Origin: Podarcis filfolensis
Taxonomy: Eukaryota
Length of the DNA: 64,000 nucleotides
Assembly (NCBI GenBank): GCA_964270895.1
Contig: OZ185439.1
Strand: one strand, 5' to 3'
Below the pieces are notes generated by a model that saw only the letters and a program-made list of their open reading frames with translations, did not search any database and had not been told where the DNA came from. Both the position numbers and the translations under genes were made by a program. Below are positions 10,605-47,498 of this stretch, piece by piece. Numbering within the stretch: the first letter of the stretch is position 1; the number at the start of each line of letters is the position of its first letter.

Positions 10605-11584
10605 CCAATTGGGGAGAGATCATCAGGGGGTTTGGGCTGGGTGTTCATCAGATGATACCCAGTTCTACTTTTCTTTTAAATCAGAACCAATGAAGGTGGT
10701 GAAGGTCCTGTGTGAGTGTCTGGAAGCGGTTGGAGGATAGATGGTGGCTAATGGATTGAGGTTGAATCCTGACAAGATAGACGTACTGTTTTGGGGGGAC
10801 AGGAGGCGGGCAGGTATGGAGGACTCCTTGGTCCTGAATGGGGTAACTGTGCCCCTGAAGGACCAGGTGTGCAGCCTGGGAGTCATTTTGGACTCACAGC
10901 TGTCCATGGAGGAACAAGTCAAATCTGTGTCCAGTGCAGCTGTCAACCAGCTCCATCTGGTACACAGGCTAAGACCCTACCTGCCTGCAGACTGTCTCCC
11001 CAGAGTGGTGCATGCTCTAGTTAACTCCCGCTTGGACTACTGCAATGCGATCTACGTGGGGCTACCTTTGAAGGTGACCCAGAAACTACAACTAATCCAG
11101 AATGCGGCAGCTAGACTGGTGACTGGGAGCAGCCGCCGAGACTCTATAACACCAATCCTGAAAGACCTACATTGGCTCCCAGTACGTTTCCGAGCACAAT
11201 TCAAAGTGTTGGTGCTGACCTTTAAAGCCCTAAATAGCCTCGGCCCAGTATACCTGAAGGAGCATCTCCACCCCCATCGTTCTGCCCAGACACTGAGGTC
11301 CAGCTCTGAGGTCCTTCTGGCAGTTCCCTCATTGCAAGAAGTGAGGTTACAGGGAACCAGGCAGAGGGCCTTCTCGGTAGTGGCACCCGCCCTGTGGAAC
11401 GCCCTCCCATCAGATGTCAAGGAAATTAACAACTACCTGACTTTTAGAAAACATCTGAAGGCAGCTCTGTTTAGGGAAGTTTTTAATGTTTGATTCTATT
11501 TTTAATATTCTGTTGGGAGCCGCTCAGAGTGGCTGGGCATACCCAGCCAGATGGGTGGGGTATAAATAAATTGTTGTTGTTGTT
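10605..11584 (+). mobile_element. 5'-truncated L2-clade LINE (dead RT C-terminus plus 3'UTR and tail)
   Basis: ORF 10741-11493 has LNPDK, LDSQLSM, RLDYCN, LQLIQNAAARLV, LHWLPV and FKALN motifs typical of L2/CR1-group RT. The upstream YADD is broken by a deletion and there is an in-frame TAG at 10738. It ends in cagatgggtggggtataaataaattgttgttg. Confidence 0.92.
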
Positions 11585-19200: not shown

Positions 19201-22055
19201 TATAAACTCAGTAGGATTTATCAGTCCTGGGGTTCTACTGCTAAGGTAGAGGCAGTGATTTCCTTGTAGCTGCCTGGTCACAAGGTCATTTTGCTGGTTG
19301 CAACTACATTGGTGAGTAGGGTTACAGAGTTAGGAGTCTTTCATTGGACCCATAGTTATGTGTTAATGCAGGGTGGTGACTGGGAATGGCTCTGTTCTTT
19401 CTCTGTTCACAGGCAGTAGTTTCACTCTCCTTTTATCATAATCCTTTACATTCTCACGAATCCAAATGGCACACACTGCCATTGGTAAGGAGAGCTCTGC
19501 GGTACCAGCTACACAGAGCTTTGGAGTTTAAACTTTCTGAGACTCTTTTGTCTTCTTTCGCTCCCTAGAAATGGTTCTGCACTCAGTAGCCATCCTGCTC
19601 GCAGGAACACAGAGGGCTCTGCTGTTTTATTTGGATAGGTCTTGGGACACGAGGAGGTCTGAATCTCACTCTGAGGACTTACAGGTCCCTCTGTAGGAAA
19701 GTGAACTAATATCTATAGGCCATAATGTGTTGGTGAGGGGTGGCTGGGAGAGGAGCCTTCCCTCTCTCTTTTCGGATTGTTCAGGAAGTGCATTTTCTCT
19801 ATTATTTCAAATATTACAACTTCCTGGATAGGTTGAAGGTCTTTCATAATTCACGCTTCTGTTATTCTTTATGCATGCCAAATGCAGGCTGTTAAACATA
19901 AATAAAACTTCCAGTGCCCAACCAGGAAAAATAAACTGCCAAGACTTGTCCATCCTCTAAAAGGAAATAGAATATATTTTCAAATTTTCTTCCTCATCAC
20001 TATATTTCCATTTGGTAGCTTTTCTTTGTGGCTCTGTTACATTGACACCTACGATTGTTATTCTGAAATACATTTATTTTCCTTTATTCTGTGTTTTATT
20101 TCATTGTTGTAAGGCAATTTTCAGAATACAATTAAAATAGGATACGAAGAAATAATTCTGCATTAACAGGACTGTGTGTGTTCTGGAATATAATTTTGCA
20201 ATTCAGAATTTGGCAGCCTGGTAAGAACCTCATCTTTTTATTTTAAAGCAAATATCCAGTCCTTGAGGTCTAGATATGCAATATGGCAGGTGAAGTTTCA
20301 GAAGCTAGTGGGTGTAAACAGGATTTTTCTAGTTTAGTGAGTTACAATGCCCTGCATAGCTTTTCACTGCATAGTCTTCAGCAGTTTACTTGACACATTA
20401 CCTCGCTTCCTGACTGTACATGTCTACTCAGAAGTAAATTCCACTGAGGTCAAAAGTGCATCAAAGTGTGTTTGGGATTGCAGCCTTAGCTCTGCAAAAT
20501 AAAGACATGTAGGAAAATAATTTATACGGGTTCTAAAACTTTATTTAAAACCCCCCAAAACCTGTTAGCTTCCACTAAGTGGAGCAGTTTTAGAACAATG
20601 AAAGTGGAAAAAATGAAAGTGCCAGGGACTGCAAAGAGTAGGCACAAACTAGGAAGATCAGCCCTTGAGATCAGGTTATTTTGCTTAAAGCTGGAGAAGC
20701 TACAACTCAAGTAGTCACAAAGGGTTCTGAGTAAATTGCACACTCCTTTATCAGCAGAATTCATTCTTATGCTTGGCTCTTACTTCTCTAGTTGTAAAAA
20801 TTGGAATAATCATTACCATAGCGAAGATGAAAATAGTAAGGATTATAATGTATTTTGCAATCTGAAAGCCATCTTAAAATGATAGGTATTCATAATGATC
20901 GCATGCTATGCTCTTGGTGTTTCATTTGAACTAGGGCTCCCTTAACAGGACATAGATGATGAAATCTTCCATCCTGGAATATGAGAAGGAAAAATGTGAA
21001 GCCTGCCGACCTATGCACAGTTAGAAATAGGCTCCATTGAACTCCATGGGACTTACTTCTGAGTGAACATGCAAAGGCTCAGGCTACATAGGAGGCAGTA
21101 CACATCTCTGTACATATACAGAGTGCCTTTCCATCATCAGTGAGCAGTTAGAGCCAAGGCCCACATTCCTGGGATGAGAGGACTGAGTTTCTTGTTCAGA
21201 ACGTATGTGTTTAAGGCAGGTTTTAGTTCCAGCACCTTCCCTTTTTAAAGTTAATATCTAGGGGCTTCTTAACCAGATAATGTGAGTTATTGTGTAATGG
21301 TCTGAATGAGGCAAAGGCCTGTTTGTGACATAGAAAGCTCCATTCCAGCACCTCGTAGGTCTCTGAAATGTCGGTGGTCATCTTACAGAAGTAATGGTCA
21401 CTGTTATTAAGAGCCACTATACAACTGAAAGTTCAGGGCTACCATTAAGTAGTAAATCATATTACTCATATATTGAGAAATGCTATTTCAAAGGCAAAGC
21501 GCTATGGAATAAATACACTTGGGTTTAGCTTTGAGACAATGGAGAGCTTGTGTAAAATGGATACAAGGTGAAAGTAATTTTTAAACTTTTATTTTCAAAG
21601 AGTTTTGTGACCCATTTTGGCTCCTTTACTTGATGTCCTTCCATTGCTTTTTTGATTTTTTTTAAAAAAGACTCTTACTATTATATCAGGTCCAGAAAAA
21701 AAAATCCCTGCTTTTCAAAATAGGGTAATTCTGTGTGTTTTTATATAAAAAGTAGAGTGAGACATATGTGACGTTAGGAGTGCCTATTGCAACCATATTA
21801 AAATGACTAGTGACCCCCCCCCCCAATTCCAGTAGCATACAATTTGGCACAAACATTTTGAGGTCAGATGTTACATGTGCTTTTGTTTTGTTTGTCAAGA
21901 AATAGTAGGACTGTCAATAGCTATCAGCCAGGATAGCTAAATGAAACTTCCATGTTCAGAGGCAGCATGCTGCTGATTATCAGAAGGCTGCCAAATGCCT
22001 CTGGGAAGCTCAAATGTGTGGCATGAAGGCAATAGCCGTCTCTGTTCCAGGCACT

Positions 22056-22386
22056 TAAAGGGTAAAGGGTAAAGGGACCCCTGACCATTAGGTCCAGTCG
22101 TGGCCGACTCTGGGGTTGCGGCGCTCATCTCGCTTTACTGGCCAAGGGAGCTGGCGTACAGCTTCCGGGTCATGTGGCCAGCATGACTAGGCTGCTTCTG
22201 GCGAACTGAGCAGCGCACGGAAACGCCGTTTACCTTCCCGCCGGAGCGGTACCTATTTATCTACTTGCACTTTGACGTGCTTTTGAACTGCTAGGTTGGC
22301 AGGAGCAGGGACCGAGCAACGGGAGCTCAGACCATTGCGGGGAATTGAACTGCCGACCTTCTGATCGGCAAGTCCTAGGCTCTGTG
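22056..22386 (-). mobile_element. Sauria SINE, near full length
   Basis: The reverse strand reads cacagagcctaggacttgccgatcagaaggtcggcagttcaattcccc (B box) ... aagtagataaataggtacc ... ending in a (ccttt/accctt)n tail. Confidence 0.92.
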
Positions 22387-22838
22387 CTTAGGGAAGCCTA
22401 TCGCACAGAGATCACACTTGCAAGTTTCCCAAAGCCCTCTTTGGAAGCAGAATCCTGAACTGGATGGACCTTGGGTCGAATACATAGGACAGCTATTAAC
22501 ATTATGTGCTTGAAGTCTTGTGATTAGGTGACACGTTTTTACTTTTATTACAAAAATGCATTCAATCTCAGTTTTAAAGGAAAAAATTGTGGAAGTGTTT
22601 TAGCTTCTTAGTGTCTCCTGTAAAGCAAAATGTAATACACGATTGCAACAGAAAGGATGTCAGTTGCATTAAATTAGAGTACTGTATGTTAATTAGCTGC
22701 CCCATTCCACCCTTGCAGTGCATATTCTGTTGCTCTCCCCTAATTAAGAGATCAAGGATCCTATGTTGTTTTCATGTGCAGTTTGTTTGAAAATCTCCAA
22801 ATATGTGTGTATGTGTGTTAAGCAGCTGATACATTGTA

Positions 22839-23621
22839 CCATATTTTTCGCTCTATAGGACGCACTTTTTCCCCTTCAAAAATGAAGGGGAAATGTGTGT
22901 GCGTCCTATGGAGCGAAGACGCCATAGCCCCGCGACCCTCTCCCGGCTGGAGAGGTAACGCGCGGCTATGGCAGGAGCCTCCATAGCCGCGCGTCACCTC
23001 TCCAGCCGGGAGAGTGCGTGCGGGGCTAAAGCAGCCCCCCGCGACTCTCTCCCGGCTGGAGAGGTAACGCGCGGCTATGGCAGGAGCCTCTATAGCCGCG
23101 CACAACCTCTCCAGCCGGGAGAGCACGTGTGGGGCTAAAGAAGCCCGGCTTACTCTCTCCCGGCTGGAGAGGTGATGCGCGGCTATGGCAGGAGCCTCTA
23201 TAGCCGTGCGTCACCTCTCCGGCCAGGAGAGCGCGTACGGGGCTAAAGAAGCCATAGCCCCGCGACCCTCTCCCAGCTGGAGAAGTGACGCGTGACTATG
23301 GCAGCAGCCTCTCCGCTGCGCCTTTCCGCTGCTCCCTGACCTGCTCTTTGGGGCTGGTGGTGGGCTTCCCCCCGCCAGCCCCAAAGAGCAGGTCGAAAGG
23401 AACCTTCCAAGGTAGCCGCCTGAACGCACCTTAAACGGCACCTTGTTTTAGAGCGGGAAAACAAGAGGGGGAAAATTCTCCCACTCTCTGCGCAGCGCCT
23501 CCTGCCACTTCGCTGAAGGGGCGCTGGGCAGAGAGCGGAAGAATTTTTTTCCCTTGTTCTCCCCACTCTAAAACAAGGTGCATCCTATTGTCCGGTGCGT
23601 CCTATGGTGCAAAAAATACGG
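22839..23621. mobile_element. pogo/Tigger-like non-autonomous DNA transposon (783 bp) with an internal hairpin array
   Basis: TA|ccatatttttcgctctataggacgcac ... gtgcgtcctatggtgcaaaaaatacgg|TA. Same terminal type as the element at 12240; no transposase ORF. Confidence 0.9.
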
Positions 23622-25349
23622 TACTTCTTAAAATCTGCTCTTTGGTCTCAGCCAGTTACATGACAGGAAAGGACAATAGCATTAGTTTCAAAATTGCAGA
23701 CGGTGACTTGCTTGACAGCAGCCCGAAGAGGAGTCCTGTCCCTTAAAAGTGAAGCAGGGAAGGCTTCCGAGTTCTGTCTCTCTGTCAGAAGAAGAACCCC
23801 TTCTCAGTTTACAACCTGTGAACAAGACGCCTGCACAACTTCACAGGAACCAGTCAGAGCCATTTCATTGTTTGAAATGGAGTTCAGATGGCATCACCCC
23901 CACCACTCTGACCAACTTTTAAAAGTCTTCCTGCACCATTCAGACACCAGTGCCCACCTTCATCTGTTTCCCCCTCGTGCTGCCAGGTTTCCTTACCCTG
24001 CTGTGTGGCAAGGCTGGCCCTGAATGGGCCCAAATGGTTCAGAGCTTGCTGCATGAGGAGAGCAGCAAGCTACCTTTGCCACCCCAGGCAATGTTGTGTA
24101 GATGACAGGACATACAAACCAGAGCAACAGCATTGTCACTAAGGGCTAATTCACTGCTGCATCTCTGGTCACTGATTGTACAAGACATCAAGTGATGACC
24201 TGCATGTGCGAATGGCCCATCAGAGGTTAATTGGCAGACAGACATTTCTTGCTACTCAACACAATACCTTTCAGGAGTCTGGTTGTTTTCTGACAACTAT
24301 AAACTCCACTTCTTAATCTTTGGTACTTAAATTAAAAGCCAAAGGAAGGACAAAAGGAAGACCATCTATTGCATGCAACCTGTACATCTTGCCGTCATTC
24401 TTCCAAGACTCTGTAAGTCAGCAGTTCAGTCGTGTCTTGGGCTCATCAGCCCATAACTTACTATTCGCTTTCAAATGCACCAAGGCCATTAGATCTGGAG
24501 AAAAGTCAGATTTAAATACATTTATCTTAATAAATGGAAAAGCAAGTGTTGCTTAAAGCAAATATTCAGTGCATGCGATGTTGACATCAGATTTATTTGC
24601 AGGACTTAAAAGCTGGCCTTACTTAAATCTGTTTCAGCCGTGGATCAAATGAATTTGGTTGTCCCAACCTGGCCCCCAGTGAATCAAAGTCCACATCACC
24701 AACTCACAGCATCATTTGTCACAATTGGCAGTATCTGCTCATGAGAAAATTATGTGAGCACGGGCTGCAGAGTAGGCTTGAGGTGCATTATCAGAGCTGT
24801 ATGGGGAAGCATGCAGCAGGCTTGCCCTTGCTCCAGCAGGACTTGCTCTACTTTACTCTTGTTTTCATAAGGCCCAATAAATATCAAGTTAAAGCTGAGA
24901 ATGAGTTTGAGCTCATTTAACTGTGCTTCTGTTTTGCCATTCATGTTCAGTCACCTTTTCAAAAGTCCCAAATGTGTACTCCAAATCACTAGTGTGATTG
25001 TCACATTCTTTCGCTGTCTCTCACTCTATCAGATACATTATGAAAATGACTTTTGCATATTAACTACAAAAACTAAGGAACTGCTTCATGGATTTCCCAG
25101 CAGAATTGCATGAGAAACATTAACATATTTGGTGATTCAGAAAGGTGGAGGGAAGGGAGGGAGTAGAGGCAGAGAAAGCAATAAAGACTTTTGCATATTT
25201 GTTTTTCTGACCCAATCAAATATGCACACAAACCAGGAGGGAAATGAGTGAAAGAGGTGTACCATAATAGTGTTTATTTCACAAACTGTGTCCCTGTTGG
25301 GTATAGGGATCCCATTGATTTGCCCATAGCTTACTCCAAAGCTCATCTT

Positions 25350-28700: not shown

Positions 28701-29494
28701 AAACTTTGAGTGATATCTGGCTATGTGCTTACCCAAGGCATTGCAGTTGTTCTTTATGATTAATTTGGTGTATCCCAATGCTTATAATACAGACTGGATT
28801 GTCATTCTATTATTGACTTCCTACCTATTTGCCCAATGGAATTATCACTCACCCCCTGCTGGTGTAACTAGGAGAAAAGTTGATCCTTGTGTGTGGTGTG
28901 CCTTTATTTATTTATTTTTTAAAAGACTGCATTTGAATATACCTGTCTTCTTAGTTGGCACTTCAGTAAGCAATTTTATTCAATGAATTACCTGTACAGC
29001 CCATGTTATAGGAAGATTTGTGAATTGTCAGCAAGCATTAATAATACTTTGCTTGTCACACAGCTTGCTCTTGAGCATATTTCTTGATGGAAATACAGCT
29101 TTCTTTGCATAGGAATAATAGCTATTGGGATAAATCTTCTGCCAGATTATTTTGGCTTCGGGACTGCTACTGAGTAACACTATTTGTGCTTCTGGCCCAG
29201 TGCTGTCCACTCTTAATTAGCAACAGCAATCCAAGATCTCAGACAGAGGACTTTCCCAGCAAAGTTGGTTGGTAGGTAGATAGCTACCTCAGATCCTTTT
29301 TCTACCTGAAAGTGCGAGGAACTAAATGAGACCTTCTGCATGCAAAAATGTGCTCTACCGCTGAATTGTGGCCACTCCTTTGTGGCACCAACATGGCCAA
29401 TATGACCTCATATTTTTGCTGCAACATATATGTAGAAAATCCCCTCTTGGTTACTGTGTGCTTCTTGTCACTTACTTGCCGTTCTCTCTGTCAG

Positions 29495-29597
29495 ATATAT
29501 TACAGAGTGGTGAAAGACATTGAAGCTGGAGAAGAGCTCCTTCTGTTCATGAAGACTGAAGACTATTTACACGATCCTATGGCTCCAGACATTCATG
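29495..29597 (+). CDS. MECOM: MECOM exon: end of the PR domain and the EVI1 start codon (ATG 29549)
   Basis: tctctctgtcag|ATA ... CAT G|gtcagc, 103 nt. Translates IYYRVVKDIEAGEELLLFMKTEDYLHDPMAPDIH. Confidence 0.96.
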
Positions 29598-44703: not shown

Positions 44704-46066
<1,363 letters not shown>

Positions 46067-47498
46067 GTAATACACATGAAACAAGCTATACAGATGGCCT
46101 AAATGGTCCTCAGCCATTTAATGTAATAAAATGCACAAATAGTTGAAATTTGAATGAATGCAGCTTAGGGACTGGGGATTTTTAAACATTTATTCTCTTA
46201 ATACAAAATAATTATTATATTTGAAGCAATTTTCCCTTCAGAAAAAATAATGTATTTAAAAATTGGCAGTCAAATCCAGCTTTTGTTTGCAAACTAGGAA
46301 CGTCGATCTCCACTGCAATCAAAGGTGTTTCACTCAAGAACTCAAAACACGTTGTACCATAGCAACACAACGTGGAACTCAAGGGTAAAATTCTGCCTTT
46401 ATTTACAATCAAGTAATCTACTGATTTGTTTTTAATTATTGGGAAGTGTTTGTTGCACTCTGCTGTGCAGAGTATTACAACTAATGCCAAAGAAACTGCA
46501 TGATAAATAGTAATATAGCAATGAAATATCAATAACAGTAAATATTACTTAGTGTGTTCTGATATTTTATTGAACACAGGACAATAGAACAATTATTCCA
46601 AAGGGAAATAGCAATATATGCTATTTCTGGATCTATCCAGGGAGACACCCGAAAGAGCCGGTGCATTCAAACAAATTCAATTTGATATCCCTGATTAGAG
46701 ATTTTTCTGGGTTTTCATAAAATAGTTTCTTTATTTGCCACATTGAATGGGTACTGTCTTCCTTGTGATCTCTGGAAAGACAATACAATAAATTGTTTCC
46801 CCAAGTTTGCCACTTCAAATGGCAGGCTAGCCAAGTTTCTCTCTTTGTAAGTAAGAGCCCAAGCCTGATGGATCTATCATCAGGCATGCAGCTGTACCCA
46901 AATATAGTTTCCTCATGAGTGGAAGTATTCTAGCTGCCCCCTGACAATGCAGACTAGTGTGTTTCCCATGAGTATATTGACTTCTCTTGGTGTACAGCCG
47001 TAGGTGCGTATGTGTTGCAAAGGAGCAAAGCAGACCACAAGAACAGATGAACAAAAATCTAAACAAAACGCAATTGGACAAGAGATAATAACGGCTGCCG
47101 GCTGCCTAAGGTGTTCATTCCCATGTAATATGCCAGCACACGGCAAGAGTTTTCTAAATTAATTAAATAATTAAAGGCTCTTTAATTGAAGCCCTCAATA
47201 ACCCACCCACAGAGCAGAGAGCTCACTGCATCTCTGCATGATTTACTGCTGTGGCTTAACATCCTTTGAATGAACCTCTGCTTTGGATGGCCCTCTCTCT
47301 CTAATGGAGAAACTCATTCATCCGCAATGCAGAGATGGCAGCAGAATTACCCACCCTCAGAAGGGACTCCAATCTGCCTGTGCTTGAGTCACTGCTCTGG
47401 CCTTGCTTCTTTCCCACCAGGAGACATACCCAGATCAGTGACTCATGCAGAAACACAGGGAGTGAGGGGCTCCTCTGAGAGTGAGTAATTTTAACTCT

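Follow-up and report, generated by a model that had tools for sequence, protein, structure and literature searches.

The EVI1/MECOM gene of the lizard Podarcis filfolensis appears to carry, in one of its introns, a tandem array of long GC-rich palindromes. Each of these palindromes could fold into a long stem, and the question is whether such an array has a role at this locus or whether it is a passenger that arrived with a mobile element. We analysed the array within a stretch of 64,000 nucleotides, called the window (contig OZ185439.1 of assembly GCA_964270895.1), and all coordinates refer to it. The original prediction, made from the letters of the window, had placed the palindromes inside an intronic MITE and had considered a pri-miRNA-like or siRNA source, an ADAR substrate and a fragile site in MECOM as their possible roles.

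Structure of the palindromic array

The array is located at 22926-23311 and comprises three complete units, followed by the left half of another, at a period of 109 bp. Tandem Repeats Finder reported a period of 109 with 3.5 copies and 85% matches at 22928-23312. A repeat search returned a 109-nt family with three copies, the second and third matching the first at 92% and 86%, and in addition a 66-nt family with four members that includes the half unit (23246-23311). Together with the inverted-repeat arms, these searches agree with the three and a half palindromic units that had been predicted. In gapped pairwise alignments the units were 84.5-90% identical, which corresponds to a difference of 10-15.5% between them.

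Each full unit folds into a single near-perfect stem of about 45-48 bp with a loop of 4-9 nt, close to the predicted stem of about 45 bp; the RNA folds range from -79 to -94 kcal/mol with z values of -9 to -13. The first unit (U1, 22926-23027) has 34-nt arms that are 97% complementary with a spacing of 9 nt, and it folds with -94.4 kcal/mol as RNA (z -12.7) and with -55.7 kcal/mol as DNA. In the second unit (U2, 23033-23136) the arms of 32 nt are 91% complementary, the RNA fold reaches -84.5 kcal/mol (z -10.9) and the DNA fold -48.6 kcal/mol. The third unit (U3, 23142-23244) has arms of 45 nt with 78% complementarity and folds of -78.6 kcal/mol (RNA, z -9.2) and -39.6 kcal/mol (DNA); its arm mismatches are transitions, which give G-U pairs when read on the + strand. 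None of 200 shuffles was as stable as the RNA folds of U1 to U3, and the folds with DNA parameters had z values of -12 to -7.8. The left half of a fourth unit at 23256-23311 is nearest to the left half of U1 (89%, including the preceding GCCAT) and showed no fold of its own when folded alone (z -0.5).

It had also been proposed that the units pair in alternative registers, and this was seen in both larger folds. When the array was folded alone, U1 paired with U3 around the U2 hairpin (-296.7 kcal/mol, z -22.9), whereas folding the complete element gave a self-paired U1 and pairing between U2 and U3. The loop CAGGAGCCT, thought to be constant, is so in the three full units only, and the half unit carries CAGCAGCCT. 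The linkers between the full units are AAAGC and AAAGA, and the third linker is the 11-nt AAAGAAGCCAT.

An alignment of the seven arms of the array showed one and the same difference between left and right arms in each unit, at columns 9-15, where the left arms read CGCG-ACyC and the right arms CrCACGyrC. Neither pattern searches nor blastn of the element against the window found the unit motif elsewhere in the 64 kb, and a tRNA scan over the array region was negative.

The array is the middle part of a transposon-like element

The array occupies the middle of a 783-bp element that extends from 22839 to 23621. The element starts with a terminal inverted repeat of 27 nt on the + strand (22839-22865) and ends with its counterpart on the - strand (23595-23621), 23 of the 27 positions matching after reverse complementation. 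A TA adjoins the left end (22837-22838) and another the right end (23622-23623). Read from the sequence, the two are a candidate target-site duplication; two bases could match by chance, and no empty site was present among the contigs. Terminal inverted repeats are what a MITE-like element, as originally predicted, would have.

The ends were also approached with sequencing data from two lizard species. One DNA run each of organism A (X1) and organism G (X12) was used, together with contigs of X15, which is probably an RNA run, and raw RNA reads of X23, the latter two both from organism G. Contigs and reads were aligned to positions 21800-24700 at a likeness of at least 85%. Organism A diverges from the flanks of the element in the window by about 0.6% and organism G by about 3%. 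The contig pieces of organism A that cover the unique flank end at 22836, and those of organism G probably stop at the same point; in both runs the pieces restart at 23621. One contig of organism A (X1 record 3) equals 22354-22870 in length, which suggests that it reaches about 34 nt into the element.

Outside the array, the element is a chain of hairpins as well. The left terminal hairpin (22847-22917) has 19-nt arms, 95% complementary and 33 nt apart, and is formed by the inner part of the left repeat pairing with its own inverted copy. To the right of the array follow a hairpin at 23338-23394, with 27-nt arms of 93% complementarity and a spacing of 3 nt, and a long one at 23438-23581, with 62-nt arms of 79% complementarity and a spacing of 20 nt.

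The longest open frame across the array, at 22821-23210 on the - strand, had no relatives in the protein collection. An autonomous partner was not found, and the 64-kb window holds no other copy of the element. Exact-pattern scans of metagenome contigs with the unit motif and with the terminal repeat gave no matches, nor did a full-text literature search with the letters of the terminal repeat. The element shows the marks of a MITE, being 783 bp long, non-coding, present in high copy number and flanked by varied sequences at the loose ends of its copies. As judged from its sequence, it fits a non-autonomous transposon of wall lizards, putatively of the Tc1/mariner type.

Position within the EVI1/MECOM gene

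Relative to EVI1/MECOM, the element is situated about 6 kb upstream of a coding exon, on the strand of the gene. This exon (29489-29572, +) encodes the tail of the PR domain and matches positions 92-118 of PF21549 with an E value of 1.5e-4, under the cut-off of Pfam. Further downstream, the long central exon at 44922-46070 (+) is 87-97% identical to proteins named EVI1 or MECOM, the exons being compared one at a time by reference. It is interrupted by a run of N at 45631-45762, and a second such run lies at 44708-44887. The predicted location in MECOM is supported by this identity. The element is probably intronic; the first part of the PR domain must be encoded still further upstream.

Some neighbouring features were also recorded. 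A stretch at 1501-2000 resembles a CpG island (GC 0.64, CpG observed/expected 0.90); it precedes the PR-tail exon by about 27 kb and may be the promoter or first exon of EVI1. At 10741-11493 (+) an open frame of 250 amino acids resembles, by eye, the final part of a LINE open reading frame, and it had no match in Pfam. A tRNA-derived SINE in minus orientation lies at 22068-22386, its tRNA-like head cut at 22386; we take it to resemble the Sauria SINE of squamates. This SINE has by far the highest depth in the aligned stretch (3-4.7e7, compared with about 80). In a contig of organism G, positions 22057 and 22413 are connected by 13 different letters; at this locus the contig thus lacks the SINE, which is a lineage-specific insertion located 450 bp away from the MITE.

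The element is abundant, and other copies share the array

To estimate how common the parts of the element are, we compared their depth with that of the unique flanks, where the summed word depth was about 80 in X1 and about 9 in X12. The summed contig depth is an order-of-magnitude proxy and not a copy number. The left end (22770-22963) was covered at 13,000-36,000 times the depth of the flanks and the right end (23546-23642) at 3,500-6,000 times. Within the left end, the terminal repeat at 22839-22865 reached about 13,000-16,000 times the flank depth and the terminal hairpin at 22847-22917 about 27,000-36,000 times, more than any other part of the element. The three bins of the array (22964-23254) were at 110-455 times the flanks, and 11-60 distinct contigs covered each array place among the places listed. 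The ends thus belong to a very large family, whereas the array-bearing form is a minority subfamily with about 10^2 copy-equivalents of array-like sequence.

In all four runs, many copies leave the sequence of the one studied here directly after 22917. The copies that lack the array go on past this position with sequence in which GCGCGGCTAT, a motif of the unit, is found (consensus of the loose ends, with an agreement of 0.6-0.7). From its letters, the unit looks home-grown from interior sequence of the family. As a separate observation, the left 80-90 nt (22837-22925), comprising the terminal repeat, the loop and the inverted copy of the repeat, are 50-300 times commoner than the remaining interior, and this part may also exist as a separate, much smaller MITE.

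Other copies were found to contain the array in the same surroundings. On the left side, one contig of organism G (X12 record 10) runs from the left hairpin into U1, and another (X15 record 20) starts exactly at 22837 and continues gap-free over 217 nt via U1 into U2 with 88% identity. On the right side, U3, the half unit and the sequence downstream of it are spanned by X12 records 11 and 12 and by X1 record 4. Since the same junctions occur in other copies, the array, half unit included, must be older than the spread of the subfamily. Two contigs of X1 skip exactly 218 nt, the length of two units. The number of units therefore varies between copies, and the flanking modules are unchanged.

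These data bear directly on the role that had been suggested for this locus. The original prediction itself had named an array in many scattered copies as speaking against a function, and array-like sequence is indeed present in the two species, at about 110-455 times the flank depth, in dozens of distinct contigs and with the same junctions. A role that is specific to the MECOM copy finds no support here.

The array shows no signs of use by the host

An array that is shared by many copies might still be used by the cell. In this case the 45-bp stems would be cut to miRNA-like or endogenous small interfering RNAs, or edited by ADAR, and would affect MECOM or silence the family. There is a precedent in Made1, where mariner-derived palindromes became microRNA genes, the human mir-548 family (PMC1784062). 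On either strand the predicted stems are highly stable, and members of the family are present in the RNA data, both in the raw reads of X23 and in the contigs of X15. We consider such a use very unlikely for the following reasons.

The RNA library X23 comes from another species, about 3% diverged, and from unspecified tissue, and about 12% of its reads were taken. A role confined to particular tissues might therefore not show in it. The depth of these reads was zero in every bin of the unique flanks, so this intron was without detectable transcription in the X23 library. The few RNA reads of the array had the letters of the family and at least 8 differences from the copy in the window, among the places listed, and hence derive from other copies. 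Across the bins of the element, the ratio of RNA to DNA depth was 1.5-5 per thousand. The array bins, at 2.2-4.9, did not exceed the highest of the other bins (up to 5.0), and the RNA signal is as expected from passive read-through of scattered copies. The RNA depth thus tracks the abundance of the DNA copies, and the array is not enriched.

Editing by ADAR was assessed by comparing the RNA reads of organism G (X23) with its DNA (X12). Here, A>G differences were found at 32 places in RNA and at 26 in DNA, which is no excess, and G>A differences at 47 places in each; the reads in this comparison stem from a large number of paralogs, and this locus contributed none of them.

A pri-miRNA-like nature was likewise not borne out. 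A search of Rfam at a permissive threshold gave 55 matches distributed over both strands, nearly all of them with models of microRNA precursors from unrelated families of plants and animals. None came near its gathering score, the best one having 53.8 bits against a cut-off of 168, and such sub-threshold matches are what any long hairpin gives. Typical pri-miRNAs and substrates of Drosha have shorter and less perfect stems, and longer loops and linkers, than the near-perfect stems of 45-48 bp, the loops of 4-9 nt and the linkers of 5 nt in this array.

The substitutions in the arms are uncompensated, which also argues against host use. Selection for the stem was considered separately and rejected; there were no compensated changes and the differences between the arms are single-sided transitions, although three units give this comparison little power. 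In conclusion, nothing that we found shows a role for this copy in the MECOM intron.

CpG content and decay of the array

The CpG dinucleotides of the array are largely retained, as had been noted before, with an observed/expected ratio of 0.84. For the whole element the ratio is 0.81, compared with 0.17-0.18 for the flanks and 0.27 over the window. At 783-784 bp, with a GC content of 0.60 and a ratio of 0.81, the element also exceeds the formal limits of a CpG island (at least 200 bp, GC above 0.5, observed/expected above 0.6). Its GC-rich interior might then act as a mobile CpG island or as a cluster of protein-binding sites, serving as promoter, enhancer or insulator and scattered over the genome, including into MECOM. 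A recently inserted piece of GC-rich DNA would, however, show a high CpG ratio anyway. No transcripts starting at or near the element were found in the X23 library, and the loss of CpGs has already begun.

This loss was seen in two comparisons. Among the 15 arm substitutions outside columns 9-15, 13 are transitions and 6 are losses of a CpG. These substitutions are single-sided, giving G-U pairs in the RNA of the + strand and mismatches on the other strand. When compared with the majority of the family, the copy in the window differs at 10 or more places of the array. Nine of the 10 differences listed are transitions, and 4 of them are changes of CpG to TpG or CpA on this copy. The divergence from the family majority is at least about 2.6% at the places listed. 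Transitions of this kind suggest methylation in the germline and are the decay that methylated DNA would undergo. A function as a mobile CpG island is likewise very unlikely.

The retained CpGs had been explained by an insertion that is young or unmethylated. This was half right: most CpGs are kept, and the decay is nevertheless under way. The insertion is young enough to retain most of its CpGs, yet it is not new.

Origin of the array

The asymmetry between left and right arms, which is shared by all units, indicates that the palindrome formed once and that the whole 109-bp unit was then copied head to tail. Separate insertions of small palindromic MITEs, which were also considered as a source of the units, were rejected in view of the head-to-tail order, the like linkers and this shared asymmetry. 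Since the units differ from each other by 10-15.5% and this copy from the family majority by at least about 2.6%, the duplications are older than the insertion. It is also very unlikely that a minisatellite expanded locally once the element had inserted, in which case the array could be an unstable or fragile site specific to this locus. In favour of this, copies differ in their number of units, as the 218-nt skip shows, and hairpin-forming repeats are prone to slippage. Against it, the array has the same neighbours on either side in other copies of two species, the odd half unit being included, and the duplications predate the insertion.

Taken together, our results argue, with a probability of about 85%, that the array represents the minisatellite inside a single copy of an abundant, non-autonomous, TA-flanked transposon of the Tc1/mariner type, 783 bp in length, and that it is a passenger at this locus. 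The structure of the array, the ends of the element, its multi-copy state, the shared junctions, the variation in unit number and the absence from one library of RNA specific to this locus were all observed; the assignment to Tc1/mariner, the way in which the units were duplicated and the neutrality of the array are inferred.

The following history would account for these findings. A palindromic module of about 100 bp, related to the interior of the wider family, would have arisen once. The whole 109-bp unit, consisting of palindrome and linker, would then have been duplicated head to tail, likely by slippage or template switching at the hairpin or by unequal exchange. These duplications would have taken place in a master element prior to its spread. 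Cut-and-paste transposition would have carried the array to roughly a hundred or more places, and copies would have gained or lost whole units afterwards. One copy would have inserted into the intron of EVI1/MECOM, where the array is presumably a passenger that decays slowly, chiefly by transitions. Wherever read-through transcription occurs, the stems of the array would form, and nothing indicates that the host makes use of them.

Comparison with known elements

MITEs that bear tandem repeats are a described kind of element (PMC12628747, PMC3879986). The comparisons that follow were made by description. In Xenopus, the Tc1/mariner MITE miDNA4 contains a satellite repeat, present either as a single monomer or in arrays that differ in length (Scalvenzi and Pollet, as summarised in PMC12628747). 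It resembles the lizard element in being a vertebrate MITE of the Tc1/mariner type with an interior array that spreads with the element. It differs in that its repeat is a captured satellite, whereas the lizard unit is a near-perfect GC-rich palindrome that apparently comes from the family's own interior.

The Xstir repeats of Xenopus are derived from the interior of a MITE, and a stem-loop mechanism during replication was proposed for them (Hikosaka and Kawahara 2004; PMC12628747). As summarised there, they are like the lizard repeats in their derivation from internal MITE sequence. Xstir arrays, however, are described outside the MITE as well, whereas the lizard unit is known here inside the element alone.

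In bivalves, the clam element DTC84 and the pearl family carry up to five core repeats within a flanking 'cassette', the number varying between copies, and the palindrome in each repeat was proposed as a hotspot of length change (PMC3879986). Both elements are modular MITEs with core repeats of variable number between flanking modules (PMC3879986). In contrast to the lizard element, each repeat of DTC84 ends in a 12-nt palindrome, and the element has a target duplication of AA and a microsatellite tail (PMC3879986). In the lizard element the whole unit is palindromic, TA adjoins both ends and a microsatellite is absent.

Made1 with its mir-548 genes resembles the lizard element as a mariner-derived palindromic MITE with a hairpin transcript (PMC1784062). 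The Made1 hairpin is, however, the element itself, of about 80 bp, and small RNAs are documented for it (PMC1784062). The lizard hairpins are longer, GC-rich and internal units. The particular trait of the lizard array is that its entire unit is a GC-rich near-perfect palindrome; otherwise it is an ordinary, though neat, passenger repeat.

As the evidence stands, the array carries little weight for the biology of MECOM. It is conceivable that the MITE subfamily has seeded the genome with about a hundred or more hairpin arrays that are processed, as siRNA or edited double-stranded RNA, or left unmethylated, and that intronic copies alter their host genes. We give this no more credence than the mobile CpG island. 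If it were true that cells process such arrays or leave them unmethylated, intronic copies such as the one in MECOM would alter the output of the host gene. The element illustrates cleanly, in a vertebrate, how a transposon can carry a minisatellite of its own and spread it, here one whose whole unit is palindromic. As such, it bears on the birth of satellite DNA from mobile elements and on the tolerance of hairpin-forming DNA in introns.
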